This document shows positions 8,627 to 28,577 of a DNA stretch of 64,000 nucleotides, piece after piece (within the stretch, counting starts at the first letter, position 1; every line of letters begins with the position of its first letter). The stretch lies in the sequence record NC_031126.1; one strand, written 5' to 3'. The notes beneath the pieces are model-generated. The model worked only from the letters and a program-made list of their open reading frames with translations. It was not told where the DNA came from and made no database searches. The position numbers were made by a program, and so were the translations under genes.

Positions 8627-8635
8627 GGAATCATT

Positions 8636-9520: not shown

Positions 9521-9531
9521 AGGAGAAAAAC

Positions 9532-11061: not shown

Positions 11062-11073
11062 GAGGACTTACTC

Positions 11074-12054: not shown

Positions 12055-12956
12055 TGGGCATTAAGTTAAAATGGGACGACCAAGCCGATCAACAATTGGA
12101 CGCTATTGAGATTTATCGTAGTGATACCCAAATTGACGAAAACAATCCTGGCACACCCATTGTGGTATTGGGGGGTGATGCGGTGGAGTGGGAAGACGAT
12201 AGCGTACGTATCGGAAATACCTACTACTACAGCATTGCGGTGGTGAAGGGAAGCAATCGCTCATTCGCGGCTAATCAAACACAAGGTTACTATTCCAATC
12301 TCGGCCCTGGCCCGTCCAAGGTAATTCGTGGGGATTGGGTGCGGGGCTACTTCGGTGAGATAACACCAACCGAATGGGCAACCGTCACGGATATCACGGA
12401 TAAAATTAAAGCCAAGCTGAAAAGTGTTGTTGGTATCACGTTGGCCACAAACACGTCCGATATCTGGTATAAGTTTGTCTATAAAGGCAAGATTCTGCTT
12501 ATTCCTAATCGACAACTTATCACCAGTAGTAACTGGCAGAATGGTTATAACGCGGGTTTCATTTATGGTACAGATGATTTCGGTAAAACCCCGGAGGGTG
12601 ATGCCGGTAATGTTAATCAGTTAACTGTAATTGAAGTGGGGGGTTATCAGTTTATTGCCCGTGCCATTCGTTTAAGTGATAAACCAACCACGGAATATCT
12701 GACTGCCGCTGCTGATTTCAACGACAGCGAATGGAAAAGTACCTACGCGCGTTTACGTAACGATGCCGCGGCGTTGACTGACCCGACGATACAGCCGCGT
12801 GTCTCTGACCTAGGCTCTATTAACGGGACGGGTAGTGCACATATGGCGGACGCAACAAAACTCGCCACCGTGTCGAACACTGCACCTGAGGTTTTGACTA
12901 GCGCTGTGAAAACCGCATCCATTAACTGGATGGTAGTGTTGGAATTGATACCGTAA
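12051..12956 (+). CDS. Virion/receptor-binding protein, class C of triplet 4
   Basis: MGIKLKWDDQ...IEIYRS, LGPGPSKVIRGDW; start overlaps the previous stop (GTGATG); ends VVLELIP. Confidence 0.8.
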   Translation: MMGIKLKWDDQADQQLDAIEIYRSDTQIDENNPGTPIVVLGGDAVEWEDDSVRIGNTYYYSIAVVKGSNRSFAANQTQGYYSNLGPGPSKVIRGDWVRGYFGEITPTEWATVTDITDKIKAKLKSVVGITLATNTSDIWYKFVYKGKILLIPNRQLITSSNWQNGYNAGFIYGTDDFGKTPEGDAGNVNQLTVIEVGGYQFIARAIRLSDKPTTEYLTAAADFNDSEWKSTYARLRNDAAALTDPTIQPRVSDLGSINGTGSAHMADATKLATVSNTAPEVLTSAVKTASINWMVVLELIP

Positions 12957-13008
12957 ACAAAAAAGAAAAGGCTCTACACCCCAGAAGGAGTGTAGAGGTC
13001 TTTTTTAT
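12957..13008. terminator. Bidirectional intrinsic terminator
   Basis: Stem CTCTACACC(C)C-AGAA-GGAGTGTAGAG flanked by A-tract and T-tract, between convergent genes. Confidence 0.8.
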
Positions 13009-13475
13009 TTGACGAGTGATTCGCCTGAGTCGGGTGCAAGTACACACTGCAAGAACGTCATTCCGATACCATCTCCGGTGTTTGGATTCACCGTGGATGT
13101 GGAGAAGACCGGGGCTCTAGCACCGAGGGCATGTATTCGGTAGTAACGCGCCCCTGTAGACAAATCAACGGCACCATCAATCTTACCCAACAGGTCTTTA
13201 TAGAGCTGAGGTGATTCGACTTTGCCGTCTGGGTAAGTGGCTACCCAACCCGCACCATTATCAATGACCGTAGCCGAATAGGGTTGTAACTGCAATGACC
13301 CCAACTGCGGTTGGAAGCGCGTGAAGTTTTCCTTCGTGGCGCTACACTGATAAATTGTGAAGGAAGTTGCTTCAACCGGAACTGTGCCAAATTGGCCAGA
13401 TTGATTTGGTGCAATTGCGCACCCTGCCAGCAGCGTAGACATCACGACTACCATCAGCATTAGACGTTTTAACAT
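13005..13475 (-). CDS. Putative lipoprotein (moron-like)
   Basis: Basic N-terminus, hydrophobic stretch, lipobox LAGC; RBS AGGA; antisense to the flanking structural genes. Confidence 0.75.
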   Translation of the reverse strand: MLKRLMLMVVVMSTLLAGCAIAPNQSGQFGTVPVEATSFTIYQCSATKENFTRFQPQLGSLQLQPYSATVIDNGAGWVATYPDGKVESPQLYKDLLGKIDGAVDLSTGARYYRIHALGARAPVFSTSTVNPNTGDGIGMTFLQCVLAPDSGESLVK

Positions 13476-13595: not shown

Positions 13596-14129
13596 ATGGC
13601 TATTGTTTCTGCCCAGACGCAACTCGTTGCTCTGTTTAATGCTAAGAACACCGGCCTCGCGCAAGCGCTGGCTGTTGCTGATGTGGACTTTGGCGCAGTT
13701 GCGGTTTACACCCCAGGCGATGGTGGTGATACCCGTAACTCCAAACTGACCATTACAGCGAAGGCTGGCTCTGAACACTTCTCCGGTGAGAAAGAGCTGC
13801 ACTATACCCGTCTCGCGGGTGCTGGATTGGTAGGCAACAAAGCGCTTACCGAAGACCAGGCTGACTGGGACACCGATGAAGAAGTGCTGGCCAAGTTCAA
13901 CGCTGACGTTATCGCTGCGGGTAAAACCGAAGATGCGTTTGTGGAGAGTGAACTGACCTTCACCCGCACTGACGGTCAAGACGGTGCGAAAGTTATCACT
14001 GTTGCGATCAAAGCAGGTCACATCAAATTCATCGAAGGTGATGCTGCTGTGTACACCATTACTCAAGAAGTCGTGAAGACTGACCTGAGCACCACCAATG
14101 GTGAGCTGGACGGCTTTACTACCTCTTAA
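13596..14129 (+). CDS. Virion structural protein (short anchor-domain paralogue)
   Basis: RBS GAGGT. Homologous to the class A N-terminus (L..LFN..N; RNS.LTITA; F.GEKELHYTR); ends LSTTNGELDGFTTS; codon use rich in GCT/GGT/CTG/ACC suggests high expression. Confidence 0.8.
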   Translation: MAIVSAQTQLVALFNAKNTGLAQALAVADVDFGAVAVYTPGDGGDTRNSKLTITAKAGSEHFSGEKELHYTRLAGAGLVGNKALTEDQADWDTDEEVLAKFNADVIAAGKTEDAFVESELTFTRTDGQDGAKVITVAIKAGHIKFIEGDAAVYTITQEVVKTDLSTTNGELDGFTTS

Positions 14130-14201: not shown

Positions 14202-14756
14202 GTGGCAATCGTAACAGCGCAACAACAACTATGTGATTTGTATAATGCCGCTAACCCAGAGTTACCACATCCGCTGACGCCAGAAGATGTTACTTTCGGT
14301 TCTCGTGGCCCGTACACCCCTGAAGATACAGAAGGTATGGAGTTTATCCCTAACTTCGCACTCAACCTGACTGCCTCTCCGGATAGCCCACATTTCCGTG
14401 AAGACATTACGGTTCATTACCGTCGTGTGCCTGTCGGATTTATTTCCGACGGCGGTGAAATGCCGGTCGAGGGTGCCGTTACGGACTGGAACAACGATGC
14501 CTTCGTTATTGATTATATCAACGAGCGATTGCAAGTGCAGTATCTCCGTGATGAGTTGACTGAAGACGACCTTATCATTGACCGTGCGAACAACAACGAC
14601 TCGACGGCACTGAATATTCTCGTCACACTGATGAACCACATCAAATTCGAAAATGTTGCTTTCACCCTCGCCCTCCCGCTGGAAGCAGAGAAGATTGATA
14701 TCTCTACTCTCGATGGCGAATTAAATGGTTTTGAATACACCCCGCCCGTAGTCTAA
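14202..14756 (+). CDS. Virion structural protein (short anchor-domain paralogue)
   Basis: GTG start after GGAG; MAIVTAQQQLCDLYNAANP paralogous to 13596; ends ISTLDGELNGFEYTPPVV. Confidence 0.75.
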   Translation: MAIVTAQQQLCDLYNAANPELPHPLTPEDVTFGSRGPYTPEDTEGMEFIPNFALNLTASPDSPHFREDITVHYRRVPVGFISDGGEMPVEGAVTDWNNDAFVIDYINERLQVQYLRDELTEDDLIIDRANNNDSTALNILVTLMNHIKFENVAFTLALPLEAEKIDISTLDGELNGFEYTPPVV

Positions 14757-14763
14757 ATTTGGA

Positions 14764-15282
14764 GTGCTTATGGCGCAGACATTGCAAGAGAAGTTCATTG
14801 ATTTAATCAATACAAAGAATCCCGGACTGAACCTTACATTGGCCGATGTTACCTTTGGTGACCCTGCGCCATATACGCCGAGCACCGAGGGCGATGCGCG
14901 CAATACTGTTTTGACATTGACAGCGAAACCTGAAAGTCCTGGATTCCGTGGCAGTAAAGAGTATCACTTTACACGTTTTAATCTGACCCATCCTAATGGG
15001 GAAGATGCGTATAGTTGGGCAGTCACTGACGTACATGAGCCTTGGCAGGATGATGCGTATGCGTTACAGCAATTCAACATGAACCTGCCAAACGATAAAC
15101 CTACGTTAGATGATGTAACCATCACCCGCTGGACGGTGCCGGAAGAACCAAACAACCTTTACGTGAAAATCAAACTTCACGACACGCTTTTAAAATGGTG
15201 GGGCTCGTTTGTTATTCAGGTCGAGGATGTAGGTAAACAGCAGTTGATGTTTGCCACAGGTGAGTTAGACGGCTTCAATTAA
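14764..15282 (+). CDS. Virion structural protein (short anchor-domain paralogue)
   Basis: Probable start ATG 14770. LIN.KNP, DVTFGDP.PYTP, RNTVLTLTA, F.GSKEYHFTR; ends ATGELDGFN. Confidence 0.75.
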   Translation: MLMAQTLQEKFIDLINTKNPGLNLTLADVTFGDPAPYTPSTEGDARNTVLTLTAKPESPGFRGSKEYHFTRFNLTHPNGEDAYSWAVTDVHEPWQDDAYALQQFNMNLPNDKPTLDDVTITRWTVPEEPNNLYVKIKLHDTLLKWWGSFVIQVEDVGKQQLMFATGELDGFN

Positions 15283-15330
15283 TAAAAAAGAGTACCTACA
15301 CCCTTTGGGGTGTAGGTACTCTTTATTTTA
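15283..15330. terminator. Bidirectional intrinsic terminator
   Basis: Perfect 17-bp stem AAAGAGTACCTACACCC-TTTG-GGGTGTAGGTACTCTTT between convergent operons. Confidence 0.9.
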
Positions 15331-15349: not shown

Positions 15350-16063
15350 TCAGACCTTTAATAACGGAGTCTGCGTAATCGGCTCACTTACAGGCTGAAC
15401 GCCCCAGAACTCCGCAGAGGCGTTAAATGGCCGCTTGATGTTCTGGTAACGCATGTTCACACAGCGGTGTGTAGTCAAGTCGTAACGTTCGTGTTCCGGT
15501 ACTGCCAATTCAATATCATCCCGGAAGAACAAATAGTTGCGATTGTAGTTCAGCGTAATGTCGGACGGAGACGGGTAGCTGTACTCATGCGGGTTATCGT
15601 TCTTGTCAGCATAAGACGGCCAACCGAAACGGTGGACGGCTTCGTAGAAAGACTGCGCAACAAAACTATCAACGCCGGTCATTTCCATAATGCGTAAGAA
15701 CATCAAATCCGCAAACGCTTTATCCGTCGAACGTGACAGGTTACCCGACGGGGTATCTGGATAAGGAACCGGTGAAGGTGCACGCTGATATAGCAGGTCG
15801 TGTATACACGCAGCAGCAGCCCATGGTCCGTCCGGATGCAATAACGGTTGTAGTGCAGGCGGGATGCTCGCCAAGTCCGTCACAAAGCCCGCAGGGGCTG
15901 TCACATACATTGTTTTATCCGGATGTGTTCCCGTCAGATACACCATGTTATCCATCCCGGCATGGTCACGATACAACGACCGTAACGTGAATGGAACCCG
16001 GAAATCATCAGTCAGCACAAACCACTGTTTGTCCAGCACTTTGTATTTCATTTCTTGAATCAC
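15350..16063 (-). CDS. DUF1353 family protein
   Basis: P.GFVTDLASIP and A..AACIHDLLY motifs characteristic of DUF1353; GTG start overlaps the upstream stop. Confidence 0.85.
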   Translation of the reverse strand: MIQEMKYKVLDKQWFVLTDDFRVPFTLRSLYRDHAGMDNMVYLTGTHPDKTMYVTAPAGFVTDLASIPPALQPLLHPDGPWAAAACIHDLLYQRAPSPVPYPDTPSGNLSRSTDKAFADLMFLRIMEMTGVDSFVAQSFYEAVHRFGWPSYADKNDNPHEYSYPSPSDITLNYNRNYLFFRDDIELAVPEHERYDLTTHRCVNMRYQNIKRPFNASAEFWGVQPVSEPITQTPLLKV

Positions 16064-16893: not shown

Positions 16894-17550
16894 TTACGCC
16901 AGGTTTTCTTCCTTGGCCATTGCCATCACCGCAGTGAAGTCATTCTGCTCTGCCAGCGTGCGAAGTTTTTGTTTCTTCACATTCAGCGCCATATGTAGGT
17001 CATTATCACGTTGGATAATCGCCGCATACAGTTCCTGCACGTTTGCCAAATCAAACGGCTCGACTGGGGTGTTCATCGCATCAATCCAATACATCGGGTC
17101 AACCGCAGACTGAATATAACCAGCCAGAGCAGCACGCGATTTCTCGGTCGCTTGATAACGACGCTCACCAACAACAATGTCTTCGTAACGCAGGTTTTCG
17201 TAACGGGTATTCAACTCACCCAAGATACGGTTAAACTCACGCCACATGTGGCCGACTGTCGACGCCAATCCTTTACGGATATCATCTAACGGCAGCTCCA
17301 GCACATCTGCGATAAACTCCTTGGTCTTCTTCATGATGAAGTTGACCTCAACATCAGACAGGTCGTAACCTTTTAAAGCAGCGATTGCTGCCTTGTCTGA
17401 CATTCCGTTTAACAGATGGTAATGCAGGAGAGTACAGAACCCCTGCTTAGTTGCATCTTCGCTGCGGTGAATCGCCTGATAGTTACCATGACGGTCAATC
17501 GGCGCTCCCATCTCGAAGTAACGACGTTTTATTTCGTCATTATTAAGCAT
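16894..17550 (-). CDS. DUF4376-like tail-fibre-associated/assembly protein
   Basis: C-terminal half R....R...I.V....YQA.EKSR..L.G.......YWIDA.N..V.......EL..AI..R....H.....K matches the DUF4376 pattern, recognised by eye. Confidence 0.7.
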   Translation of the reverse strand: MLNNDEIKRRYFEMGAPIDRHGNYQAIHRSEDATKQGFCTLLHYHLLNGMSDKAAIAALKGYDLSDVEVNFIMKKTKEFIADVLELPLDDIRKGLASTVGHMWREFNRILGELNTRYENLRYEDIVVGERRYQATEKSRAALAGYIQSAVDPMYWIDAMNTPVEPFDLANVQELYAAIIQRDNDLHMALNVKKQKLRTLAEQNDFTAVMAMAKEENLA

Positions 17551-18086
17551 TCATTCGCTCCTACCAGCCCCAGTTCCATCGCCAGCCCGAAATCAAACAT
17601 CTGGAAATCGGTCTCTAACTCATCACCGAAGTGGAAGTTAAGAGTTTTGGCTTCGTCCTGGTTCTGTTCCATATATCCAAACACCATATGCATCTCTTCC
17701 CCGAAAGCATCATACTGCTCCAGGGAACGACAAGCACGCACGCGGATCTCAGGCCAGTTCATGGCGAGACCTAACAGATTTTCGGCATCCATATTGCGCG
17801 TACTACGGCGCAGGATTTCGATTTTGTGGCGCGGGAAGGTTTTGATGCGTTCCTCGATACCGGGGTTACGCTTCTCCACTTCCTGCAACGAGAGATGACC
17901 ACCTTCCAAACCAGACAGTGGAACAATCACGTTCAGCCCAAAGCGAACACACAGGGCTTCCACTTCCTTGGAGAAGTCTTCAGCCGGTACAATCGCGTGA
18001 ACGTTGTACAGCTTATGTTTACGGAGAAACAAGTCTACCAGGTGAAGACTACGCTTCGTAAAATTGTGTATTAGCAGGGACTTCAT
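17529..18086 (-). CDS. Hypothetical protein in the radical SAM cassette
   Basis: 185 aa; GGAG RBS; overlaps both neighbours; no recognised motif. Confidence 0.7.
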   Translation of the reverse strand: MKSLLIHNFTKRSLHLVDLFLRKHKLYNVHAIVPAEDFSKEVEALCVRFGLNVIVPLSGLEGGHLSLQEVEKRNPGIEERIKTFPRHKIEILRRSTRNMDAENLLGLAMNWPEIRVRACRSLEQYDAFGEEMHMVFGYMEQNQDEAKTLNFHFGDELETDFQMFDFGLAMELGLVGANECLIMTK

Positions 18087-19389
18087 TCGCAGGTGCTCCT
18101 AATTGAGTTTTCTTTTCTGCCTCAGAGCGAGCACGTACACAAGATACGCAATAGCACTGGGTTTTATCGTTCAAGTCGGTGTAGCGGATTGTACCGGTCT
18201 TCTGATAGAAGTATTCGGCTACAAGCAGCTTAGCCGTCGTCCAACCACATTGGCGACGTTCGCCGTGGTATTCGCGACGTGCTTCCAGTTCACCGTCCCC
18301 ATTTTCGTACGCAGCAGCAGCACAGCTACCACAGGCGTGTTTCATTGGGCAACCCAGGCAAGTTTCTGGGTAGTTAGTGTACTGCTTATTGATTTCACCT
18401 AACAGCTTACCGCCGTCGGTGTTCACAATCTCACGCCCCACGAGTTCGCCAATAGCCTGACGCGTGGTAACGGTTGACATGAAGCGGTTACAACCGTAAA
18501 TCTTACGGTCAAAGCCCAGGCAGGTCATGTGCGTTACGGTACCACAGAATGGACGCACACGCTCAGGGTCGAGACGAGTAGCTTCATCATCCAGCAGTTT
18601 CTGACGCCAATCCGGGTCCCACGTTGCCATGAAATCCAGGCCATCTGGGAAGATGTGAGTCAGACGGTTACGCGGGTCTTTCTGCAAGCCCTTTTCAAAC
18701 CAGTAGTCGATAACGTCCATCATCTGGTTAGCAATTTCCAGAGCGGAACTACGTGGCAGCACATCTTCGTACGTCACGTTACCGGACAGTGTACCACCGC
18801 CAGTGACATCAATCAGGTGCTTCATTGACGCGCCATATTTCGGCAGCGTATCAGCAGTGAAAGTAGCCTTCACACCCAGCTCGAGGATTCCCACGGACTT
18901 GAGGTAGTTATAGCCCTTCATAGCCTTCTCGTACGAACCTTCACGCGTGGTAGTGAAGATACGGTACTTATCATGCACTTCCGGCAGGCCATCAATAGAT
19001 ACGCCGATCGACAGTCTGTCTTTCCAGCGTTCGATGATTTCGCGGTTCAACGGTTTGTCAAACAACGTACCGTTTGTGGAGATAGAGAAGATAACATCAC
19101 GACCATCACGAGCGGCCAGTTCTTCTGCGGCTTCAAATACACCCAGCAGAATCTTCGGCTGCATCATTGGCTCGCCACCGATGATGTCGATAATCACTTC
19201 CACGTTCGGGAGGTGACGGTCACGGTCGAAACACGCATGGATGAAGTCTACCGCATCTGCTACTTTGTTGTTACGCGGATACTTACGTTCGTAGCAATAC
19301 TCACAATCGAGGTTGCACGACAGGTTGGTCACGACCTGATAGGTCTTTGTGATTTTCGGCTCTACGGCCGGAATGAAACTATCGCGCAT
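18049..19389 (-). CDS. Radical SAM/SPASM peptide maturase, CXXX-repeat target family-like (TIGR04115-like)
   Basis: CNLDCEYC (CX3CX2C), IIGGEP, STNGTL, SIDG...HDKYR..GSY; SPASM cysteines C..C..GCNRF..CLGCPMKHACGSC..C; extra C-terminal CYCVSC. Confidence 0.93.
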   Translation of the reverse strand: MRDSFIPAVEPKITKTYQVVTNLSCNLDCEYCYERKYPRNNKVADAVDFIHACFDRDRHLPNVEVIIDIIGGEPMMQPKILLGVFEAAEELAARDGRDVIFSISTNGTLFDKPLNREIIERWKDRLSIGVSIDGLPEVHDKYRIFTTTREGSYEKAMKGYNYLKSVGILELGVKATFTADTLPKYGASMKHLIDVTGGGTLSGNVTYEDVLPRSSALEIANQMMDVIDYWFEKGLQKDPRNRLTHIFPDGLDFMATWDPDWRQKLLDDEATRLDPERVRPFCGTVTHMTCLGFDRKIYGCNRFMSTVTTRQAIGELVGREIVNTDGGKLLGEINKQYTNYPETCLGCPMKHACGSCAAAAYENGDGELEARREYHGERRQCGWTTAKLLVAEYFYQKTGTIRYTDLNDKTQCYCVSCVRARSEAEKKTQLGAPANEVPANTQFYEA

Positions 19390-20284
19390 TGTTTAGCCCC
19401 GCCTGAATAGTTCGATTGATGTACTTGTACGCATCAAAGCCGATGACTTCGGCCAGACGGTTACACCCAGAGTCAATAGTATCGACTGCATTCTGACTCT
19501 GCTCAAAAGTCGAATCCGACTTCACCCACACCAGTTGGCTGCAATCGTCACAATGCTGAGCGAAGAACTTATTGATGCTCAGTGGAATGTGCGAATCGTT
19601 GATACGATTCAGATAGGTCAGCTGCTCGTGCATTTTGTTGTAGCCGTACATGAAGTTCATGACGTGGTCAGGCGACAACGGTTTGGGCATGAAGTTATCG
19701 AACATCAGACGGAAGCCCTGGAACCCGTAGTGATACGTCGCACGGTGCAGTTCCAGTAAATCGTCCTGCCAGCGCTTATCACCCAGCTGCTCACGGGTTA
19801 CGACAGACCACAGGCTCACGTTATTGAGAGCGTGCAGGGTATCAAACACCTCAAAGCGACCTTCTTCTGCAATACGCAGTAAAGGACGTTCTGATTTTTC
19901 GTATCCGTCAAACGAGACGAAGATACGGTCAAGCTGGGAGAGTAGCGGAAGCTGCTCAGGGCTCAGACGCAACGCGTTAGTGTACATCTCGTGTTGCAGG
20001 TGCGGGTAACGTTCTTTCAGTTCTGCCATGAACTCCTGGATTTTCTTGAAAGCCAGCAACGGCTCTCCGCCTGTCCAGTTAATCTGGCGGATTGATGGAT
20101 GCTTTTCCAGCACCTCGAACAGTTTATCTTTCTGGATGTCGCGCGCAACGTCCTTGACATCCATATACCCCGCACCACCACAGAAGCTACAATCTAAGTT
20201 GCACTTCGAGGTGGTAACGATAGACAGTTCCATGGGAGTGTCTGTCGGGTCGCGACGAATGGCCGACACAGCTTCTTCACTCAT
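19379..20284 (-). CDS. Second radical SAM protein (short, Twitch-like C-terminus)
   Basis: CNLDCSFC (CX3CX2C), WTGGEPLL, YTN.L, VSFDG; only CDDC and GC as C-terminal cysteines. Confidence 0.9.
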   Translation of the reverse strand: MSEEAVSAIRRDPTDTPMELSIVTTSKCNLDCSFCGGAGYMDVKDVARDIQKDKLFEVLEKHPSIRQINWTGGEPLLAFKKIQEFMAELKERYPHLQHEMYTNALRLSPEQLPLLSQLDRIFVSFDGYEKSERPLLRIAEEGRFEVFDTLHALNNVSLWSVVTREQLGDKRWQDDLLELHRATYHYGFQGFRLMFDNFMPKPLSPDHVMNFMYGYNKMHEQLTYLNRINDSHIPLSINKFFAQHCDDCSQLVWVKSDSTFEQSQNAVDTIDSGCNRLAEVIGFDAYKYINRTIQAGLNNAR

Positions 20285-20305
20285 TGCAGGTTTACTCCAG
20301 TATTT

Positions 20306-21193
20306 TTATTCGAATGTCAGTGCGAACAGTGGGTCTTCTTTGATGTCCACACCCTGCTTCAATACGAAGGGGTCATGGTAGGCAGCAAGAATCTTGTTCA
20401 ACACTTCATGACGCTCGTTAATGCGTTCCAGGTCATCGAGAGTAACCTTACGTTCGAGGATTGCACTAGCGGCCACTTGCTCTTCAACGCTCAGGTCAAC
20501 CTTCTGCATTAAGAAGCTCACCAGCTTCGTTAAGTCTGCTTCGGTACCCGGCGCTTCACCGTATTTCCACTGCACCAGATACTGCATCCACGGCTTGCGG
20601 ATACGCTTGGTGATTTCGTGTTCGTCGGTGATGGCAACAAATTTCTTCTCGCTGTGCAGCCATTTAAACTTATAGCTGAATGCTAAAAGGTCAAGCATCT
20701 TGTGGATGCCAAGGCTTTCGTAGCCTTCGATTGGGTAATAGATTTCTACCCCTTCGTAGTGCTCGGTTTCCGCAGGCACTTGCGAATACCAGAATGGCAG
20801 AGAACTCGGGTAGTCCCAGCTCCACTCACGACGCACCATTGGCTTGAGACCCGTTTCTGCAAACGGCGTCAGCAGCATTTCCAAATCACCGCACTGGTTC
20901 AACACACCATCGCTGAAGAAGTATTTACGGTCAATGAACTTGCCGTTGATTTCCTGCTCACCGGTATTCAGGTAGATATGCTCAACCTTGTGCCCAGCCA
21001 ACATGTAATCATTCAGCACTTCGAAGTTTTTCGGATTGATTAACTCACGTCCGCGAACCTTCGGCCATTCAGCAGGCAGCTGAGTAATCAACAGGATTTC
21101 GCCTGTCAGATGATACTTCACGCTGTCATAGATGCTGATTTGTAATGGAAAGTTTTGCGTTGTGCGAAACGCAAGGTGCATATCGTTCTTCAT
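20306..21193 (-). CDS. Hypothetical protein in the radical SAM cassette
   Basis: 295 aa, GGGGAG RBS; lies between the Cys-rich peptides and the radical SAM genes; aromatic-rich N-terminal part, helical C-terminal part. Confidence 0.75.
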   Translation of the reverse strand: MKNDMHLAFRTTQNFPLQISIYDSVKYHLTGEILLITQLPAEWPKVRGRELINPKNFEVLNDYMLAGHKVEHIYLNTGEQEINGKFIDRKYFFSDGVLNQCGDLEMLLTPFAETGLKPMVRREWSWDYPSSLPFWYSQVPAETEHYEGVEIYYPIEGYESLGIHKMLDLLAFSYKFKWLHSEKKFVAITDEHEITKRIRKPWMQYLVQWKYGEAPGTEADLTKLVSFLMQKVDLSVEEQVAASAILERKVTLDDLERINERHEVLNKILAAYHDPFVLKQGVDIKEDPLFALTFE

Positions 21194-21205
21194 TTAAAAC
21201 TCCCC

Positions 21206-21424
21206 TTAACGGTTTCCTGCCCCGTGACTACAGCCACCGCTGCACGTCCAGCTGCAAGACCCGCCGCAATTGTAATGCGATAGTGGGAGACCCGCCAGAT
21301 TGTTCGTGGTGCTTACCGTACCACTATTACGAATATAATCGTTCGCATCGTCGGTACGGATGTAGCCTTCCACTTGCACCAGCTTGTCTCTGATACTTTT
21401 AAGTGATATCACAGTAACCCCCAA
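21206..21424 (-). CDS. Cys-rich peptide 3 (short core), putative radical SAM substrate
   Basis: ISLK..RD.L..VE leader homologous to peptides 1 and 2; core CGGSCSWTCSGGC (4 Cys); likely start GTG 21412 or TTG 21424. Confidence 0.75.
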   Translation of the reverse strand: MGVTVISLKSIRDKLVQVEGYIRTDDANDYIRNSGTVSTTNNLAGLPLSHYNCGGSCSWTCSGGCSHGAGNR

Positions 21425-21459
21425 GTGTGTAAAAAATATGGTGAGGGTCGGCTACACTG

Positions 21460-21855
21460 TTAGCGCATCGGCCCGGAACATCCTGAACATCCGGAGCAGC
21501 TTGAGCTGCACGATGAACTACAACCGCCTGTACAGGTTCCAGAGCAACCGCTAGAGCAGCTACCAGAGCAACCTGAACAGCCCGTACACGTCGACGAACA
21601 GCCTGACGTACAACTTGCAGAGCAACTGGCCCCGCACGTTCCTGATGCCGAGCCTGAGCATCCACCTGAGCACGATGAGCAGCTCCAACTACAGGTACCG
21701 CCACAGTCATAGTGCTCACGGGAGAAACCCCCGAAACGCTGTGAGTTATTGGTTCCCTTGTTGCGGATGTAGGTTTGTACACCGGCGGTGTTTTTCAATG
21801 ACGCAGCATCGATAGCATTAAGCCGGTTTTGAATATCTTTAAGGTTGATTGCCAT
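21460..21855 (-). CDS. Cys-rich CxxxC/CxxC repeat peptide 2, putative radical SAM substrate (TIGR04114-like)
   Basis: 50-aa Cys-free N-terminus MAINLKDIQNRL, then 20 Cys in a Ser/Gly/Thr repeat starting DCGGTCSWSC and ending CSGCSGCSGPMR; GGGG RBS. Confidence 0.88.
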   Translation of the reverse strand: MAINLKDIQNRLNAIDAASLKNTAGVQTYIRNKGTNNSQRFGGFSREHYDCGGTCSWSCSSCSGGCSGSASGTCGASCSASCTSGCSSTCTGCSGCSGSCSSGCSGTCTGGCSSSCSSSCSGCSGCSGPMR

Positions 21856-21864
21856 GTTTTTCCC

Positions 21865-22248
21865 CTACGGCCCCGAACAGCCGGAACAGCCACCGCAGCC
21901 GGAACCACAGGAACCAGAACAGCCGCTACATTTACCAGAGCAGCTACCAGAGCAACTCCCGGAACAACCGGAACAACCTGAACAGCCGGTAGAACACCCG
22001 CCTGTACATGCACCGGTACACGTTGAGGTACAAGTACCCGAACAACTCGTACACGATGCGGAACAACCATTAGAGCACGACCAGCTACACGTTCCACCAC
22101 AGTCCAACTGAGCAGGCGTCCAACCAGCGAAGCGATCCGCTGCGTTAAAGGCCCCTGATGCTACCTGGGGATCAACCCGAGGTCCAGTTGCGTAAGTGTT
22201 CTCCACGCTTTGCAGGCGGTCGCGTACGTTTTTTAATGAGATTGCCAT
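21865..22248 (-). CDS. Cys-rich CxxxC/CxxC repeat peptide 1, putative radical SAM substrate (TIGR04114-like)
   Basis: 49-aa Cys-free N-terminus MAISLKNVRDRL, then 21 Cys starting DCGGTCSWSC and ending CSGCSGP; AAGGA RBS. Confidence 0.88.
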   Translation of the reverse strand: MAISLKNVRDRLQSVENTYATGPRVDPQVASGAFNAADRFAGWTPAQLDCGGTCSWSCSNGCSASCTSCSGTCTSTCTGACTGGCSTGCSGCSGCSGSCSGSCSGKCSGCSGSCGSGCGGCSGCSGP

Positions 22249-22310: not shown

Positions 22311-23516
22311 TTATTTGGTACCTGCTTCCGCCTGTACGTCGTCTCGAGAAGTAAGGCTCGAGTTGACGTGTACCGCAGCCTGAACCACACCGCCGTACTG
22401 CTTGTGGAGATATTTCGGGTGCGGGTTATCCGCATTGACGTGCGTATTCAGGTTCTGAGACACCGTCGAAATAGCAGAGGTGTTGTTGGCGACCTGTTGA
22501 CGCAGCGCCGTCAAGTCTTGCTGGAGCTGCTGAATCTGTTGCTGGGTATCTTGACCCGAGTTTTCCAGGTCAGTGATACGTTGATTCAAGCCCGCAATCA
22601 CCTGATTCTGGTCAGTGACCATTTTCTGGAGTTGCGCTACGAGGTCGTTCAGATTCGCCATCTGCAACGCCATGCGCTGATAGTTCTGCGCTACTGAGTT
22701 CAGCTGATCGTTCCAGGAACCCAGAGCAGCCACTACCGCATCAATGCGTTGGTTGATTGCCGTATCTGCCGCTTTCAAATCCCCGATGTCTGCCAGCACA
22801 GCATTGATTGCTGTCTGCACACCTTGAATCAGTGCACGGATTTCCGTTTCAGTTAAACCGTTCGCCTGATGGATATCCAAGCTGTGAACGTTACCTTGGG
22901 CGTTGATGTGATTATTCAGTGCAGCCATAAACTGCGTCTGCATATTCTCAATCAACACTTTCAGTTGTTCTAACTGTACGGTGTTACCTGAATTAATGCT
23001 GTCACGGATACCTGCCAGTTCGGTAATGATGTATTCAAAACCAAAGATGTCGCCGATGTCTTTAAAGGACGGAGCAGCCGCAAAGGTATCCGGTACATTA
23101 CGCAGGTCTTTGAAGTTTACCACACGGTCATCCAGGTTCGCGTCAATCAGCGCCTGTTTAATCGCAGCGATGTTCGCTGACTGTGGACCACCGGTGACTT
23201 GCGCACTGGCAACAACATCGGTCGGGATGGCGCTGTTTGTAACAACGACAGCCATACAGATTTCTTTGTTACCGGCAAGCTTCTGGTAAACGGGGTGGAT
23301 GTAGATAAGCTCGTAATCGACACCGCGCTTATACGTTGTGTTTGGCGAGTTCGCTGGTCGCAGTTTAAAGGTATCTGCGTAGAACGGCCCCGCCGGGAAA
23401 GCGAACGCACGGTTAACTTTCCCACCACCCAACACGATAGGAATACTGACGGCGTTAGACGTCATCTTCCCCGTGAGGTCGAGTGGATACTGAAGTAAAA
23501 TATCTGGCATGGCCAA
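22311..23516 (-). CDS. Tail fibre shaft / virion structural protein with long coiled coil
   Basis: N-terminal GPFY..../GVDY baseplate-type domain shared with the long fibres; Gln/Leu heptad coiled coil; H..ADNPHPKYL fibre motif near the C-terminus. Confidence 0.75.
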   Translation of the reverse strand: MAMPDILLQYPLDLTGKMTSNAVSIPIVLGGGKVNRAFAFPAGPFYADTFKLRPANSPNTTYKRGVDYELIYIHPVYQKLAGNKEICMAVVVTNSAIPTDVVASAQVTGGPQSANIAAIKQALIDANLDDRVVNFKDLRNVPDTFAAAPSFKDIGDIFGFEYIITELAGIRDSINSGNTVQLEQLKVLIENMQTQFMAALNNHINAQGNVHSLDIHQANGLTETEIRALIQGVQTAINAVLADIGDLKAADTAINQRIDAVVAALGSWNDQLNSVAQNYQRMALQMANLNDLVAQLQKMVTDQNQVIAGLNQRITDLENSGQDTQQQIQQLQQDLTALRQQVANNTSAISTVSQNLNTHVNADNPHPKYLHKQYGGVVQAAVHVNSSLTSRDDVQAEAGTK

Positions 23517-23549: not shown

Positions 23550-26500
23550 TTATAACCTCGGCATAAGATTAACGGCGATGTCTGTTGCGGTTTCCAGTCC
23601 ATTCAACCCTACCCATTTTGTTGCGACGATCATCGAGGTGGCATCCTCAGCAACAATAACTGGTGGTGAACAGGAACAGTTACCGGCAGAAACAACAGGC
23701 CAGAAGTTCTTCGTCGTGGTCGGCAACGTGATGGTTTCAGCATCAATAACACAGTTTGGAATCTTAGCATTGACGCTACTATAGGAGAGCGGGGTATCAA
23801 CGCCAGATGAAGCCAATAATGTCTCTGTCGTACCATCGAAATCATAAATGGCATAAGCACACCATTTAGACCCAAGCACTAAGGACATCGCTGGTACAAT
23901 CATCGACTGCATATCCACCACCATACGCTGACCCGGCGTTACCGTGAAGGTAGCCGAATTCGCATTCCCCGGAGAAACCACGATAGGTACACCGTTGGTC
24001 TGGAATGTCGTATCCCCGGACGTAGCAGCTTGAAGATAAATGTAGACTTTGATTTGTGATTTCGTTGGAGTAACCAACGGCCTCATCCACCAATAGGTAT
24101 TCTCAGGAATCGTCCCAAGGTTAATACCAGTCCACATCAGCCCTTTGGCTGCTGCCGCAGAGTTTTCCGCAGCCGTTGCTAAAGCACCGGACGCTTTTGG
24201 GAAGAACTTAGCAGCTTCATTTCCAGGTTCCCCGATTGCCCACACTTTCGGTGTTTTGATAATGGTCGCACGACGTTCAGAACGCTTCTGCGGTGAAATC
24301 ACCGAGTTGCTGTAACGCGCATCAAGATATGCCGGAGTTGTGGCCGGTTGCATTAACATCTCTTTGCGGAGCAGCCCTATCGGCGATAATGCTTGGTCAG
24401 TACGGCGGTCTACGTCATGACGGTATTCTGTCCCGGCGTGTTCCAACATCTGTTTCAAGCCACCCATACGCTTCACCTTCTCAAGTTGAGTGTCGATGAT
24501 GCGTGAGCTGTCTGTCGTAATCGTCCCCAGATACAAACGGTTATCAGTATCCGCCTGGCGTGTGTCCAGCAATTGGTACTGCGGAACGTTATTCACCAAC
24601 GCGACATGCACGTAGAAGATACGATTCTGGTAATTACCAGGGAAGGCGGATTTCAAATCAACGGAATAGGGTGCAGCACTATAATACTTCGCACCAATAC
24701 GCCAGCTGGTTGTTTCCGTCATGTAGAAGTTCCACCCTTCGGCGGTCTTCACCCCGGCCAGTATCTCTACCGGTGCACCAGACGGCACATACATCCCCGA
24801 CGCCATCCATTCGGCAAGTGACGCTGAACTCCCCGCACAGAACGCTGGCCCAATCGCATTTAAGCTCGTGAGGCACAACTTGTCCTTTAATGGCACCATG
24901 TACGAAGGATCGTAATTAGTACGATGCATGCGGAGATGTGCTACCGTCGCTACAAACGACGTACTGGCATCGTATACGATTTCCAAATTCAACGCACCCG
25001 TGTTACCCACCTGGTTAACCGTAAGCACGTTTGGAATATATAGGATACCTTTCTTGTCGGTGCCTTCACAAAGGATGGATTGGCCGTAACGGCGACCACG
25101 CCCACTGAAATCCGTAAGTGAGATATTAGTGGTAGTGTAGTCCAAGTCATTCGTCGACCAGATACGGGTGACCGTACTCACCGGGAAAGACACATCGCCT
25201 GTAGCTGAAACAGTCGGTGTTACTCGAAACAGGTAATAATCAATAAGCGTCTTACCGTTACGCACCGCCATACACGCAGCCTGTACCATCCATACGGCAT
25301 TAGATGCCTTAGGGCGGAACGTAAACAGCGAAATGAGCAGCTTGTCTGCGGCGTTGATACGCTCAAACGCAAACCCGTTCCCGGCACCTGACCCTGGAGA
25401 GGACTTTACGATGCCAATCAACTTGTTCCATTCGGTGGAAGAGATGTTCAATGTGTCTGACGTTGGAGTAGACCCAACGGCCTGATAGTTCTGGCTACCG
25501 GCCGCATCCCAATAGCAACCGTTTAAGGTGCCATCGTTAATCGCAGCAGTACACACATACGGCATGGTGGTCAACTTGAGATAAGTGTTCCAATCAAATG
25601 CCGTGCGGTTATTCGTCGGGCCAAAGCCACCGTAAGCCGGATCATATCGGGTGTTCGGATCGCACTCAACCAAGATAGCACGGTTAGCCTGCACTGGGCT
25701 CATCAGATAACTGTTTGAGCCCACGAACACCGGCGAACTCATGGACATCTCGTAGAGTGACCCACGGCCCTGGTCAAACGACCACGACGCCACACCGGGG
25801 GCACCAGGTTTCGATTTACCTGACAAGAAGTCAAACGCATCTAATCCATTCGGGAGTTTACTGGTACTGCAACCCGCCACAGAAGTAGTTTCTGGGGTAT
25901 CCCAGAATACCGTTAAGTTATCGCCATTAAACGACACATATGTGCGGTTATTGGCTGTACCGTTCGGCCACTTCACATCCTGATTGTAATCGTTAATCTT
26001 CACACCGTTGGCGAATGTGATTCCAGTCTCATCCACCACCATCGGGAAGATTTCCGGGTTATCAATGGCGATAGCCTTACTCTCAAAGTCGAAAGTAAAG
26101 GAAGTAGGCCACCGTTTAAAACCTTGGCCGCCTGATGCGTTAGCTAACCAGACCGATACACAAAAACCCATGCGGAACTGGGTGTTTTTCACGACACCTG
26201 CGCGGTTTGCATGGGGACCATGTTGTACGTTCTTTCCATCCGTCCAGAAATCCCACCCAGCTTGTGTGAAATAGTGAGTACCGTCGCGTTGATTGATGCG
26301 ATCGGTAAGCGTTGCTTTCAACAGTGTATAATCACCGTTGGTGCCAACGCCACCGGTCAGCGGGAAGTTTGTGAACACCTCGTTCGGTTTACCCGACCAC
26401 ACTGCCACGCAATAACGCGTATTGTCCAGAAGCGCCTTGATAAGATAAACTTTATCTTTATACACCACTAACTGCATGGTTAACGCATCCATGACCAACG

Positions 26501-28577
26501 CACGCGTCGCACCATCAATATTTTCCTGTGGCGGCGTGAACACCGAGACGGCCGTATGTTTAGCGTGATTGAGCGTACCGTTAAACAATATCAAATACTG
26601 TCTGCCGTCGGAGCCGAGAGCAACCATTCCGTCGTCACCCGGCAGGAGAATCTTCACGAGTCTCACACCCGGAGCCAGCGTCGCTAACCCTACCGGTTTA
26701 TACGTCACCGAGGTCTGTTGGCGGTTGTTCAAAGCACCACCATCCGTCATCTCCGCGTAAGCGTAATAGATGTTATCCGTTCCAGGAATCCCATCCGTGG
26801 CGTTACGCAGCACGTATAATGTACCGGCCTCTTTCCGCACCACACCCAGACGTCCATCACCGTCAAGACACTTTTGATAACCCGCGAAGTTACCTACGGT
26901 GGGTATCGGTAAGAAACCTGGGTTACCGAACTGTGAACCGGCCGTTGTCCATGCAGGCAGTAATTCATTCACAACACCTTTAACAGTGTTGATTTTCTGC
27001 TGAACGTTATAGCCTTGCTTCGATGTCGCCACCTTATTAGTTGTGGCATCAATAGCATCCCATAGTTGTACCAGACCCGCTACGGTATCAGACGCGGTAG
27101 GTACACCTGTCAAGTCCGCAAAGGTGTGGGTGTGGTCGCTCAGCGCTTTGGTGTTCAATACCGCACGGATAGCGGTGGTCACCGGCTTCTCATTCGGGGT
27201 GGTGTTCTCCACGTTCCCCAGACCTAAGTCAGAAGCTAACAGGGTCAGTTCCTGGTTCCCGGTACTTGGGTTAGTAACAAAGCCTTTGTTGTTGACTTTG
27301 TACGTGGCGTCCACGTAGTTATCCAGCGTGGTTTTCAGCGCAGTAACTGCTGCCTGGGAGATGGCCGCACCCGCAGAGATGTTAGCCGATACAGACGTCA
27401 CCAATAGCAGACCTGGTGTTGTTGTGGTTGCCGTTGGTACTACAGCCGTCATGTTAACCGGAGAGTAGTCTTTCGCACTACCATAAATCTTCACGCTGTC
27501 CGTGGACGAGAAGTAAGCATTGGCAGGTAACAACTTCACCGCAGATAGGTATAAAGAAACCATGTCTGGGGTAATCAAATACGCACCATTGAAGATAGGA
27601 GCCTTTGCGCCGGAGAGAGCATACATGGCGTTCAAGCCAGAAGTAACTTCTATCCCAATACCCGGTTCGTTCTTATCCGCATCTGCCGTAATAGTAATCG
27701 GCTTGGTGGTCGTGATAAGGAACTTGTCACCCTGCAACGTAATAACGTGACTGGAATCCGAAGTACGGAACGTCAACGCGCCGTTGCTCAGCACTTTCAA
27801 ACGGCCACGCAGTTCACCCAACACCACCGGCATCAGTGTATCGATATGGGTTTGTTGGATACCGTTACGTTTCATCAGGTCGACCAATTCATCAATGGTC
27901 TTACCGAATGCTTTGGTGGCATCCACAGCTTTGGTCAGTACCTTTAAGGCCCCCACTTCTTCTGCTGTGTATTGGTGAGCATTCTTCACCATGTGGTGCT
28001 GATACATGTTGTCGTCGAAGATTTTCTTGCCGTTGGCGAAGATAAGTTCGGTGACTTCAGTGTATGCATCATCCAACTCGCTGGCACGTTCGAGAATCCC
28101 TTTGCGGATGTCGTCAAGTGCCTTTACCACGTCATCACGAAGGATGGCTTCTTCTAAACTGGTCGGTGGGTCAATAGGAGCCACCACTGGTGCATAACGC
28201 ATCAGCTCAGACCAGTCGACGTTACGTGGGTCTTTCATGTCCGGTTTAACCAGGAACTTCCCGATTTCGGACTGCGGTACGCGATATTCACGACCGACGG
28301 AATAGATGGTGTAATTACACGACGTTTCGGTAATCAGCATGATGCCGCCGAAGACCTGGTCTTTCAGGGCTTCCGCAGCTTCTTTGAAATAGTAGCAAAG
28401 GTAGTAATCCAACCCCTCCGTCAATGGACGTGGGTTAGTGCCAGTGCTAGTCAGTTGTAAACCGGTGCGGTAGAACGGCCCCTCGGGCGGCACAACCGTA
28501 TTGTACCGGTTTGGGTACGTCTCTAGCTTTAGCGTCCCACTGAACGGGGCTGGGGCTGTCGTCGACATGAATAACAC
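23550..28577 (-). CDS. Long tail fibre protein 1 (1675 aa)
   Basis: Probable start ATG 28568. Shared N-terminal P..GPFY/G.DY/DW module, LGLGNVENT..KPV and HTH fibre repeats, large variable central domain. Confidence 0.85.
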   Translation of the reverse strand: MLFMSTTAPAPFSGTLKLETYPNRYNTVVPPEGPFYRTGLQLTSTGTNPRPLTEGLDYYLCYYFKEAAEALKDQVFGGIMLITETSCNYTIYSVGREYRVPQSEIGKFLVKPDMKDPRNVDWSELMRYAPVVAPIDPPTSLEEAILRDDVVKALDDIRKGILERASELDDAYTEVTELIFANGKKIFDDNMYQHHMVKNAHQYTAEEVGALKVLTKAVDATKAFGKTIDELVDLMKRNGIQQTHIDTLMPVVLGELRGRLKVLSNGALTFRTSDSSHVITLQGDKFLITTTKPITITADADKNEPGIGIEVTSGLNAMYALSGAKAPIFNGAYLITPDMVSLYLSAVKLLPANAYFSSTDSVKIYGSAKDYSPVNMTAVVPTATTTTPGLLLVTSVSANISAGAAISQAAVTALKTTLDNYVDATYKVNNKGFVTNPSTGNQELTLLASDLGLGNVENTTPNEKPVTTAIRAVLNTKALSDHTHTFADLTGVPTASDTVAGLVQLWDAIDATTNKVATSKQGYNVQQKINTVKGVVNELLPAWTTAGSQFGNPGFLPIPTVGNFAGYQKCLDGDGRLGVVRKEAGTLYVLRNATDGIPGTDNIYYAYAEMTDGGALNNRQQTSVTYKPVGLATLAPGVRLVKILLPGDDGMVALGSDGRQYLILFNGTLNHAKHTAVSVFTPPQENIDGATRALVMDALTMQLVVYKDKVYLIKALLDNTRYCVAVWSGKPNEVFTNFPLTGGVGTNGDYTLLKATLTDRINQRDGTHYFTQAGWDFWTDGKNVQHGPHANRAGVVKNTQFRMGFCVSVWLANASGGQGFKRWPTSFTFDFESKAIAIDNPEIFPMVVDETGITFANGVKINDYNQDVKWPNGTANNRTYVSFNGDNLTVFWDTPETTSVAGCSTSKLPNGLDAFDFLSGKSKPGAPGVASWSFDQGRGSLYEMSMSSPVFVGSNSYLMSPVQANRAILVECDPNTRYDPAYGGFGPTNNRTAFDWNTYLKLTTMPYVCTAAINDGTLNGCYWDAAGSQNYQAVGSTPTSDTLNISSTEWNKLIGIVKSSPGSGAGNGFAFERINAADKLLISLFTFRPKASNAVWMVQAACMAVRNGKTLIDYYLFRVTPTVSATGDVSFPVSTVTRIWSTNDLDYTTTNISLTDFSGRGRRYGQSILCEGTDKKGILYIPNVLTVNQVGNTGALNLEIVYDASTSFVATVAHLRMHRTNYDPSYMVPLKDKLCLTSLNAIGPAFCAGSSASLAEWMASGMYVPSGAPVEILAGVKTAEGWNFYMTETTSWRIGAKYYSAAPYSVDLKSAFPGNYQNRIFYVHVALVNNVPQYQLLDTRQADTDNRLYLGTITTDSSRIIDTQLEKVKRMGGLKQMLEHAGTEYRHDVDRRTDQALSPIGLLRKEMLMQPATTPAYLDARYSNSVISPQKRSERRATIIKTPKVWAIGEPGNEAAKFFPKASGALATAAENSAAAAKGLMWTGINLGTIPENTYWWMRPLVTPTKSQIKVYIYLQAATSGDTTFQTNGVPIVVSPGNANSATFTVTPGQRMVVDMQSMIVPAMSLVLGSKWCAYAIYDFDGTTETLLASSGVDTPLSYSSVNAKIPNCVIDAETITLPTTTKNFWPVVSAGNCSCSPPVIVAEDATSMIVATKWVGLNGLETATDIAVNLMPRL

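Follow-up and report, generated by a model that had tools for sequence, protein, structure and literature searches.

A radical SAM cassette paired with cysteine-repeat proteins in the tail-fibre block of a jumbo phage: a probable fibre-maturation module

Erwinia phage vB_EamM_ChrisDB, a jumbo phage, carries a minus-strand string of eight genes in which cysteine-repeat proteins are paired with two radical SAM enzymes directly after four fibre-type genes. We read this cassette as a tail-fibre maturation module in which the Cys-repeat tracts would be structural parts of the fibre tip, and we put the probability of this reading at roughly 60%. Across phages, Cys peptides and enzyme occur together far more often than chance would allow, and the module occurs in hundreds of phage contigs, not in one jumbo phage alone. 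Given that the same tract is the C-terminal tail of fibre proteins elsewhere, we interpret the cassette in terms of fibre-tip maturation rather than as an antibiotic pathway.

The window, that is, the whole stretch of DNA analysed, comprises 64,000 nucleotides of sequence record NC_031126.1, with the cassette at 16894-22248, and all eight open reading frames proposed there by the initial annotation were found as placed. The string begins with P1 (21865-22248, 127 aa), P2 (21460-21855, 131 aa) and P3 (21206-21424, 72 aa), each recognized as an ORF with a match to phrog_6085 (3.6e-45, 6.4e-53 and 1.3e-26, respectively). The initial annotation had described all three as Cys-repeat peptides, which is apt for P1 and P2, with 21 and 20 Cys, but not for P3, a short paralogue with four Cys only. 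These are followed on the same strand by gp185 (20306-21193), a putative accessory protein of 295 aa that matches phrog_8030; gp184 (19379-20284), a short radical SAM enzyme of 301 aa (PF04055 at 5.8e-14) that lacks a SPASM domain; gp183 (18049-19389), a radical SAM/SPASM enzyme of 446 aa with a seven-Cys SPASM region; gp182 (17529-18086), a 185-aa protein of no named family that matches phrog_7988; and gp181 (16894-17550), a DUF4376 protein of 218 aa (PF14301 at 1.8e-10 and 41.6 bits, cut-off 25; also phrog_8169). The last four genes overlap in series, as claimed, by 11, 38 and 22 nt from the coordinates, with gp182 overlapping both of its neighbours. Directly beyond the last stop codon a terminator-like hairpin on the minus strand (16890-16869; 9 pairs, 6 of them G-C) closes the gene string; it is a consensus match only, and while the hairpin of the proposed terminator is present, its T-run is weak.

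Upstream of the cassette lie gp189 (22311-23516), a short fibre-type protein of 401 aa with a phrog_2163 match at 4.7e-108 and coiled-coil matches, and, as context outside the cassette, the large fibre/baseplate paralogues gp190 (23550-28577), gp191 (28658-32749) and gp192 (32761-36453), all on the minus strand. Their designation as fibre genes was borne out: an N-terminal phrog_2163 domain is common to all four, gp190-gp192 also give weak tail-fibre matches, and the orthologues in phage SPN3US, gp167-170 (gp167 being that of gp189), are virion proteins.

The Cys peptides are poorly represented in public records. P1 is absent from the RefSeq annotation, which calls a plus-strand ORF at its site, and a search of the protein database with the P2 N-terminus returned two called proteins only, as would be expected if gene callers miss the Cys-peptide ORFs. 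In the SPN3US annotation behind the published virion proteome one Cys peptide is read in an incorrect frame and two others are not called; thus, while gp167-173 were detected in SPN3US virions and gp161-166, the stretch with the enzymes, were not, the published proteomics could not have detected the Cys peptides of this type. In the public records of this phage group each genome lacks two or three real genes or has them wrongly framed, and existing virion proteomes therefore need to be searched anew.

P1 consists of an N-terminal part of ~49 residues followed by a 75-residue tract that holds all 21 Cys, and the N-terminal 50 residues of P2 are conserved across 57 phage records. Candidates for P3 were found in 10 of 18 jumbo-type loci (with readable sequence for six and an ORF start not resolved in four), and none was found in the CR5/Phobos/Wellington-type loci. 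Defined as at least six Cys at a spacing of 2-3 residues, the Cys-repeat pattern occurs just twice in the 64-kb window and is absent from all 68 remoter radical SAM loci used as controls. Among the jumbo-phage relatives three residues separate the Cys in 500 of 580 repeat units, and Ser or Thr directly follows Cys in 79% of the three-residue units. The tracts are composed almost exclusively of Cys, Ser, Thr and Gly, and acidic residues amount to about 0% in the jumbo-phage tier: at each of the three inter-Cys positions of its 500 three-residue units, Asp and Glu fall outside the eight most frequent residues, a list that reaches down to residues in 0-1% of units.

The Cys tracts are under very strong purifying selection. 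In the Cys reading frame dN/dS was 0.01-0.11 in the repeat tract (0.02-0.08 for P1, 0.01-0.11 for P2) and 0.12-0.22 in the N-terminal part, and it was higher in all other reading frames. Values this low within the tract led us to rule out the idea that variable residues between fixed Cys provide receptor diversity. Structural comparison offered little further: a sequence search of PDB chains with P1 returned nothing, even at E = 10, and the AlphaFold2 model of P2, built on a five-sequence alignment, had a pLDDT of 41, with only an N-terminal helix (residues 5-21) moderately confident. The proposal that the peptides are TIGR04114 targets gained no support, since P1-P3 had no NCBIfam match at E <= 0.01, TIGR04114 and TIGR04117 included; this is a low-power test, given the biased composition of the queries and the shortness of the repeat models, and the targets of canonical TIGR04115 enzymes themselves match the target models weakly, at 20-21 bits.

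In the enzyme gp183 the cluster motif begins after only 24 residues. In an alignment of 17 relatives the radical SAM CX3CX2C motif (C25/C29/C32), the N204/E208 pair and the SPASM cysteines C282, C300, C344, C347, C353 and C356 are invariant, and C381 is present in ~90%; the last four of the invariant SPASM cysteines account for the CX2CX5CX2C spacing pointed out initially. The best NCBIfam matches were to the PapB family NF047865 (126.4 bits, cut-off 340) and the CXXX-repeat family TIGR04115 (114.4 bits, E = 8.1e-33, cut-off 350), followed by the QhpD family (66 bits), sulfatase maturases (62 bits) and TIGR04463 (50.7 bits, cut-off 525), and the best PDB sequence match was CteB (5wgg, 1.7e-10). 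The affinity to thioether-type maturases that had been suggested is therefore upheld by the two closest families, but the assignment to TIGR04115 itself is not, gp183 remaining far short of the curated cut-off for each named family. The features by which TIGR04115 would be recognized, namely the CX3CX2C motif, a seven-Cys SPASM region and an adjacent Cys-repeat gene, are all present, with P1, P2 and P3 lying 2-3 kb upstream on the same strand. The enzyme gp183 is the predicted modifier of the Cys tracts. No PqqD-type Pfam match, as expected of a recognition element (RRE), was seen in any cassette protein, and neither a leader protease nor an exporter nor an immunity gene was detected in the cassette or its flanks with Pfam, NCBIfam or PHROGs. 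The initial annotation was thus correct that no transporter or protease accompanies the enzymes, and it overstated the case in calling the peptide-modification pathway complete.

In the second radical SAM enzyme, gp184, C28, C32 and C35 are invariant among 31 relatives, and its C-terminal Cys are also kept, that at position 245 in 77% and those at 248 and 274 in 100%. Against NCBIfam it reached no specific family above cut-off, the weak best match being to MoaA (44 bits). The gene for gp185 was found in 33 loci; in the two closer tiers of relatives its place is invariably between the Cys gene and the enzymes. The protein is rare, with only 41 representative clusters among 1.84 billion proteins. 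Its AlphaFold2 model is of good quality (pLDDT 88.2, pTM 0.82), and a fold search of the PDB with that model gave no match better than E = 0.7, because of which a role for gp185 as the recognition element that the cassette seems to lack was set aside, though not disproved. The remaining two proteins belong to the jumbo-phage tier only: gp182, for which there was no Pfam or NCBIfam match, is limited to 21 loci of SPN3US-like jumbo phages (18 from IMG/VR plus L001-L003, which duplicate two of those phages), and gp181 is likewise restricted.

Relatives of gp183 are encoded on 325 IMG/VR contigs. In the synteny survey that had been suggested as a check, a co-directional Cys-repeat ORF lies within ~3 kb of the enzyme gene in 85 of the 87 loci examined, the two exceptions both being cut off by contig ends, and every one of the 126 Cys ORFs is co-directional with its enzyme gene. 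Searching in the reverse direction, from the Cys tail, recovered an enzyme in 17 of 21 loci; of the four without one, three are truncated at a contig end, and the fourth, L315, has a Cys tract but lacks an enzyme within 6-9 kb. When seeded with the jumbo-phage peptides, the reverse search returned jumbo relatives only, and a degenerate DNA pattern (a Trp-containing Cys pentad plus four repeat units) gave almost entirely chance matches, 1 of 80 loci being genuine among the matches listed. The adjacency of enzyme and Cys ORF was seen in three unrelated phage architectures. The TIGR04115 scores of the relatives form a continuum, running from 586 (L043), 513 (L080) and 400 bits (L037), which at the cut-off of 350 bits are members, to 307 and 274 bits just below it, and on small phage contigs the canonical members occupy the tail-fibre slot.

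The link to the fibre itself comes from the middle tier, where most carrier phages have a tail-fibre protein whose C-terminal tail is the Cys tract. The tract-bearing proteins matched tail-fibre PHROGs at 1e-51 to 1e-54 in locus L033, 2e-40 in L031 and 3e-32 in L034, and more weakly, at about 1e-10, in L028 and L035, and the tails of the proteins from these loci match phrog_6085, the same PHROG as the ChrisDB peptides. The tract that elsewhere terminates fibre proteins of 250-570 aa has been split off in ChrisDB and the other SPN3US-like jumbo phages, which carry it on two or three separate small proteins. The likeness extends beyond the tract: the N-terminal ~50 residues of the small Cys proteins are homologous to the pre-tract stretch of the fused fibres, with phrog_6085 positions 18-50 aligning to the stretch that precedes the tract. 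The earlier preference for virion components over secreted antibiotics is strengthened by these tails of real fibre proteins.

The cassette always lies within a fibre or baseplate block. In L058 the Cys proteins come after baseplate wedge genes; in the prophage L006 the order is a T7-type fibre, a 79-aa Cys peptide, a gp185-like gene and two enzymes; and in L072, a locus unrelated to that of ChrisDB, a baseplate gene is followed by a gp189-like fibre gene (phrog_2163 at 1.8e-46, tail-fibre phrog_7037), which stands directly before the enzyme, and then by the Cys protein. With its N-terminal docking domain and coiled coil, gp189 is the likely partner of the Cys peptides.

We propose that gp183 would modify the Cys tracts, its inferred substrates, in the host cytoplasm, and that the likeliest chemistry, by analogy with its nearest characterized relatives, would be the formation of Cys-sulfur-to-carbon thioether cross-links. 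The second radical SAM enzyme gp184 and the accessory protein gp185, with its novel fold, may be lineage-specific helpers, and the remoter phages make do with the SPASM enzyme alone. The covalently stapled, redox-independent product would then be added to the fibre apparatus, with the gp189-type short fibre as its probable site, such that the small Cys proteins would end up in the virion. More tentatively, and at somewhat less than even odds, thioether cross-linking installed by enzymes may be a widespread and hitherto unrecognized step in making fibre tips, with the CXXX-repeat family, long classed as an orphan system of peptide maturation in bacteria, largely a phage and prophage fibre-maturation system. 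It would then be the first case in which a structural protein of the virion depends for its maturation on a dedicated iron-sulfur radical enzyme.

Several other explanations were weighed against this one. It is conceivable that P1-P3 are precursors of a diffusible antibacterial or signal, matured by the enzymes and freed by lysis, given that the peptides have a leader-plus-core layout and gp183 is of a RiPP-type family. We consider such a classical RiPP very unlikely, however, as leader protease, exporter and immunity genes were not found, the 'leader' is homologous to fibre sequence, the tract terminates full-length fibre proteins in other phages, and the cassette keeps to fibre or baseplate blocks. 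That the enzymes are unrelated to the peptides, and serve nucleotide, cofactor or DNA modification as the radical SAM genes of other phages do, would fit the weak MoaA match of gp184, but would make the adjacency coincidental; its recurrence in three unrelated architectures and in both search directions, with none in the control loci, brings this explanation close to exclusion by the synteny counts.

A structural role for the tracts could also be reconciled with a different chemistry or a different fate. The tracts might be held together through metal ions, or through disulfides that arise once the cell has lysed, with the enzymes carrying out oxidation of Cys or Ser, epimerization or methylation. 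Tracts built of Cys, Ser, Thr and Gly without an acidic acceptor, a SPASM superfamily that includes the sulfatase maturases weakly matched by gp183, and a gp184 that fits no particular chemistry are all compatible with this. On the other hand, the nearest named families of gp183 and its best solved relative, CteB, form thioethers, and in the SCIFF/CteB system Thr is known to serve as an acceptor; we regard the metal or disulfide explanation as unlikely. Alternatively, the Cys proteins and tails could act in assembly only, as chaperones or scaffolds of fibre trimerization that are removed before the particle is mature. Many fibre proteins do have C-terminal chaperone segments that are later cut off, the DUF4376 gene and a 'tail assembly chaperone' gene (15350-16063) are near at hand, and SPN3US gp161-166 are absent from virions. 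Two or three dedicated iron-sulfur enzymes would nevertheless be a heavy cost for a discarded part, the selection on the tract is very strong, and the module contains no protease, all of which makes an assembly-only role, in our estimate, rather improbable.

If the tail-fibre maturation reading is correct, the cassette would represent a new kind of post-translational chemistry in virion assembly. It would give a biological role to an orphan radical SAM family, explain a conserved eight-gene block of SPN3US, the genetic model for giant phages, and define a class of fibre-tip structures that are very dense in Cys and probably very stable. ChrisDB and hundreds of unrelated phages pair either Cys-repeat fibre tips or small proteins resembling fibres with a radical SAM enzyme dedicated to them, and cross-links made by enzymes may thus be an unrecognized way of building phage fibres.

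In agreement with the initial view that the system is uncharacterized, we found no description of the cassette in the searchable literature, nor any of the CXXX-repeat family as a phage or tail-fibre system; a cyanophage paper with a radical SAM 'antibiotic' gene proved unrelated. The TIGR04115/TIGR04114/TIGR04117 'CXXX-repeat' system was defined in silico, and to our knowledge its product has not been characterized. As in ChrisDB, its radical SAM/SPASM enzyme adjoins a protein in which every third or fourth residue is Cys, but gp183 scores just 114 bits against that family, the peptides do not match the target model, and the jumbo-phage version adds gp184, gp185, gp182 and gp181. The ranthipeptide maturases PapB (freyrasin) and CteB (SCIFF) share the three-cluster radical SAM/SPASM architecture with gp183, which in contrast has no N-terminal recognition domain; PapB uses Asp/Glu acceptors in Cys-X3-Asp/Glu units that the phage tracts do not contain, and the putative phage substrates are proteins of 70-570 aa rather than short secreted peptides.

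The SPASM enzyme CrpC of Methanococcus voltae (TIGR04463) puts thioether links into CrpA, a large Cys-repeat protein whose N-terminal ~47 residues are leader-like and recur in paralogous substrates (PMC13692751). P1-P3 of ChrisDB likewise share their N-terminus, but CrpC belongs to a different enzyme family from gp183, its host is an archaeon, CrpA has Gln/Asp acceptors in its repeats, and nothing connects the pair with viruses or fibres. In the QhpD/QhpC pair of quinohemoprotein amine dehydrogenase a SPASM enzyme cross-links Cys to carbon in a subunit that is retained by a larger assembly, although in that enzyme subunit QhpD forms three defined links, to Asp/Glu, while the phage tracts would need tens. 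Finally, self-catalysed covalent cross-links stabilize the virion in the HK97 capsid, and there, as in the module proposed here, covalent bonds harden a phage structural protein; the HK97 links form in the head and without a separate enzyme, whereas here a dedicated iron-sulfur enzyme would act on parts of the fibre before assembly.

Erwinia phage vB_EamM_ChrisDB (NC_031126.1; 244,840 bp, genus Machinavirus) is a bacteriophage, since its host, Erwinia amylovora, is a bacterium. Positions 16894-22248 of the window match it with 100% identity. In window coordinates (position in NC_031126.1 minus 124,000), the ORF map gives an unbroken string of minus-strand genes that opens with three large fibre/baseplate paralogues, gp190-gp192 (32761-36453, 28658-32749 and 23550-28577), and the short fibre-type protein gp189 (401 aa; 22311-23516), all four of which share a phrog_2163 N-terminal domain. 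The string continues with three Cys-repeat proteins, P1 (21865-22248), P2 (21460-21855) and P3 (21206-21424), followed by the accessory protein gp185 (295 aa; 20306-21193), the short radical SAM protein gp184 (301 aa; 19379-20284), the radical SAM/SPASM enzyme gp183 (446 aa; 18049-19389), gp182 (185 aa; 17529-18086) and the DUF4376 protein gp181 (218 aa; 16894-17550). The last four genes overlap serially by 11, 38 and 22 nt, a terminator-like hairpin lies 3' of gp181 at 16890-16869, and the next gene encodes a GH108 endolysin. The initial annotation had described this gene string accurately. Searches of the cassette against NCBIfam, Pfam and PHROGs found no protease, transporter, immunity gene or recognition element.

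Elsewhere in the window, convergent genes that end at 15282 (+) and 15350 (-) are separated by a 17-pair hairpin with a T-run after it (15287-15324), which makes a far better candidate terminator than the hairpin closing the cassette. Three tandem plus-strand paralogues of phrog_4862 lie at 13596-14129, 14202-14756 and 14764-15282, the first of them 68% identical to gp160 of the jumbo phage SPN3US, a reported head protein present in >300 copies. The 12 consecutive plus-strand genes at 1-13063 (ChrisDB gp162-173, ~300-510 aa), annotated in the record as virion structural proteins, have a regular three-gene size pattern and look like a paralogue array.

P1, P2 and P3 all match a single PHROG, phrog_6085, with E-values of 1e-26 to 1e-53. 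When ChrisDB was compared with four relatives (dS ~0.6-1.8), dN/dS in the Cys frame was 0.01-0.11 over the repeat tract and 0.12-0.22 over the N-terminal part, and each of the other five reading frames gave a higher value, in most cases >1. On this sequence evidence the Cys ORFs are real genes. Both RefSeq and GenBank leave P1 unannotated and call instead an overlapping plus-strand 'gp188' (21854-22111); given the selection and family evidence, we favour the minus-strand Cys frame. SPN3US carries three equivalent Cys ORFs on the plus strand of its locus (L002 4097-4489, 4500-4904 and 4920-5126), where the first and third are unannotated and the annotated 'gp166' (4573-4908) is in the wrong frame of the second.

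In the enzyme gp183 a CX3CX2C motif spans residues 25-32, and the C-terminal half has seven conserved Cys, of which six are invariant and one is present in ~90% among 17 relatives down to 27% identity. Its highest scores against named families are to the PapB ranthipeptide maturases, at 126 bits (cut-off 340), and to the TIGR04115 CXXX-repeat maturases, at 114 bits (cut-off 350), and CteB is its sole solved sequence relative; gp183 is thus distantly related to the thioether-forming clade and falls in no curated family. The C-terminal ~45 residues (window 18049-18190) form an extension in the jumbo-phage enzymes that carries an extra small group of Cys (in the window protein, three within six residues) and is absent from the more distant tiers 2 and 3 described below. 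Comparison searches mark gp184 as a generic radical SAM protein, in whose C-terminal part two or three Cys are conserved. The predicted model of gp185 is confident (pLDDT 88) and a fold search with it returned no match among solved structures; the family comprises just 41 representative clusters in 1.84 billion proteins.

Phage records with the gp183-type enzyme number 99 (65 full length) and come from SPN3US-type jumbo phages of Erwinia, Salmonella, Cronobacter, Escherichia and Proteus; the N-terminus of the Cys peptides is present in 57 records. All 18 jumbo-type IMG/VR loci keep one gene order (gp189, P1, P2, (P3), gp185, gp184, gp183, gp182, gp181), with P3 limited to part of the group. 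Two jumbo-type contigs have an additional gp184-like radical SAM gene between P1 and P2 (L016 4530-5450 and L025 4531-5451).

To look beyond these phages, IMG/VR was scanned with a profile of the enzyme family alignment, which returned 325 contigs with an enzyme relative; 79 loci were kept, and loci obtained by protein look-ups were added. Profiles for local searches were derived from alignments of unaltered sequences. Counting from the best 80 loci per scan, and taking as a Cys-repeat ORF one that lies no further than ~3 kb from the enzyme gene and has at least 6 Cys at spacings of 2-3 residues, such an ORF was present in 85 of 87 loci, the other two being truncated by contig ends, and all 126 Cys-repeat ORFs lay on the same strand as the enzyme gene. 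The loci fall into three tiers, the jumbo phages constituting tier 1.

Tier 2 enzymes share 30-40% identity with gp183 and lie on contigs mostly of 15-42 kb, one prophage included; larger contigs of 213 and 284 kb (L027, L034) and ~167 kb (L004) could themselves be jumbo phages. In nine of the 11 tier 2 loci (eight distinct, L029 being identical to L030) the Cys tract forms the C-terminal tail of a 247-568-aa protein, and for five of these proteins there are hits to tail-fibre PHROGs, with E-values down to 1e-54. Their tails also match phrog_6085, and the part of the fibre immediately preceding the tract aligns to positions 18-50 of that profile. The remaining two, prophage L006 and its near-duplicate L007, have a free 79-aa Cys peptide, which in L006 is uncalled and follows a T7-type fibre gene, with a gp185-like gene and two enzymes after it. 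Genes like gp185 and gp184 are usually present in this tier.

Tier 3 (24-28% identity to gp183; contigs mostly 30-60 kb) includes canonical TIGR04115 enzymes scoring 586, 513 and 400 bits, whose neighbours are one or two Cys-rich proteins 150-540 aa long. No gp185-like gene was found in tier 3 loci, and gp184-like genes were found only in L046, which has three. 

Gene positions in the phage genomes agree with this picture. The Cys-rich genes of L058 come after the baseplate wedge genes, at the place expected for fibre genes, and L072 has the order baseplate wedge, gp189-like fibre protein (phrog_2163, 1.8e-46), enzyme, Cys-rich protein. In L084 a 416-aa protein adjoining the enzyme (6234-7487) has an SGNH/lipase-type esterase domain (phrog_6102, 2.9e-21) and, at its C-terminus, a Cys-repeat tract; evidently fibres are not the only possible carriers of the tract, and enzymatic tail proteins can bear it too.

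Two controls bear on the pairing of enzyme and tract. Bacterial species genomes supplied 80 loci, in which Cys-repeat ORFs accompanied 10 of the top 12 matches and none of the 68 remoter radical SAM loci (~0.9 Mb in all). A reverse scan from the fibre-tail alignment gave 21 loci, 17 of them with the enzyme and three truncated by contig ends; the true exception within the flank examined, L315, encodes a Cys-repeat protein of 250 aa with 22 Cys (5974-6723) and lacks a radical SAM gene in the 6-9 kb that flank it on each side. The case that enzyme and Cys tract form a functional pair is strong.

The tier 1 tracts contain 500 units with three residues between Cys and 80 with two; Ser or Thr fills the first position after Cys in 79%, Gly the second in 55%, and Gly, Ser or Thr the third in 82%, and acidic residues make up about 0%. 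A Cys-Ser/Thr-Trp/Phe-Ser/Thr/Gly-Cys pentad, CSWSC in P1 of the window, stands at the start of each of the 32 distinct tracts in tier 1 and of half the tracts in tier 2.

The published virion proteome of SPN3US lists gp167-173 and lacks gp161-166, which places the enzymes and accessory proteins outside the virion. The Cys peptides were undetectable in that work because they were absent from the annotation searched; their N-terminal parts include Lys and Arg residues and would be expected to yield normal tryptic peptides. We found no mention of the cassette, or of a link between radical SAM enzymes and fibres, in the SPN3US papers, a 2026 jumbo-phage review or the full-text literature covered, which excludes subscription journals; the absence of a published report is not proof of novelty.

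As read from the genes, fusion shows the tract to be part of a fibre in tier 2, and in tier 3 its position shows the same; for the window we infer this role from the N-terminal homology and the neighbouring gp189-type fibre. Were the cassette instead a classical secreted RiPP pathway, a protease or an exporter would be expected, but the searches of the cassette found neither; the fusion of the tract to fibres and the genome position of the cassette likewise argue against that reading.

The chemistry would most likely be thioether cross-linking, as suggested by the family affinity of gp183 and by precedent. The cytoplasm is reducing and would not permit disulfides where phage parts fold, and thioethers made by an enzyme could provide covalent stapling that is independent of redox conditions. 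The precedent is CrpC, which cross-links a large Cys-repeat protein with a leader-like N-terminus (PMC13692751).
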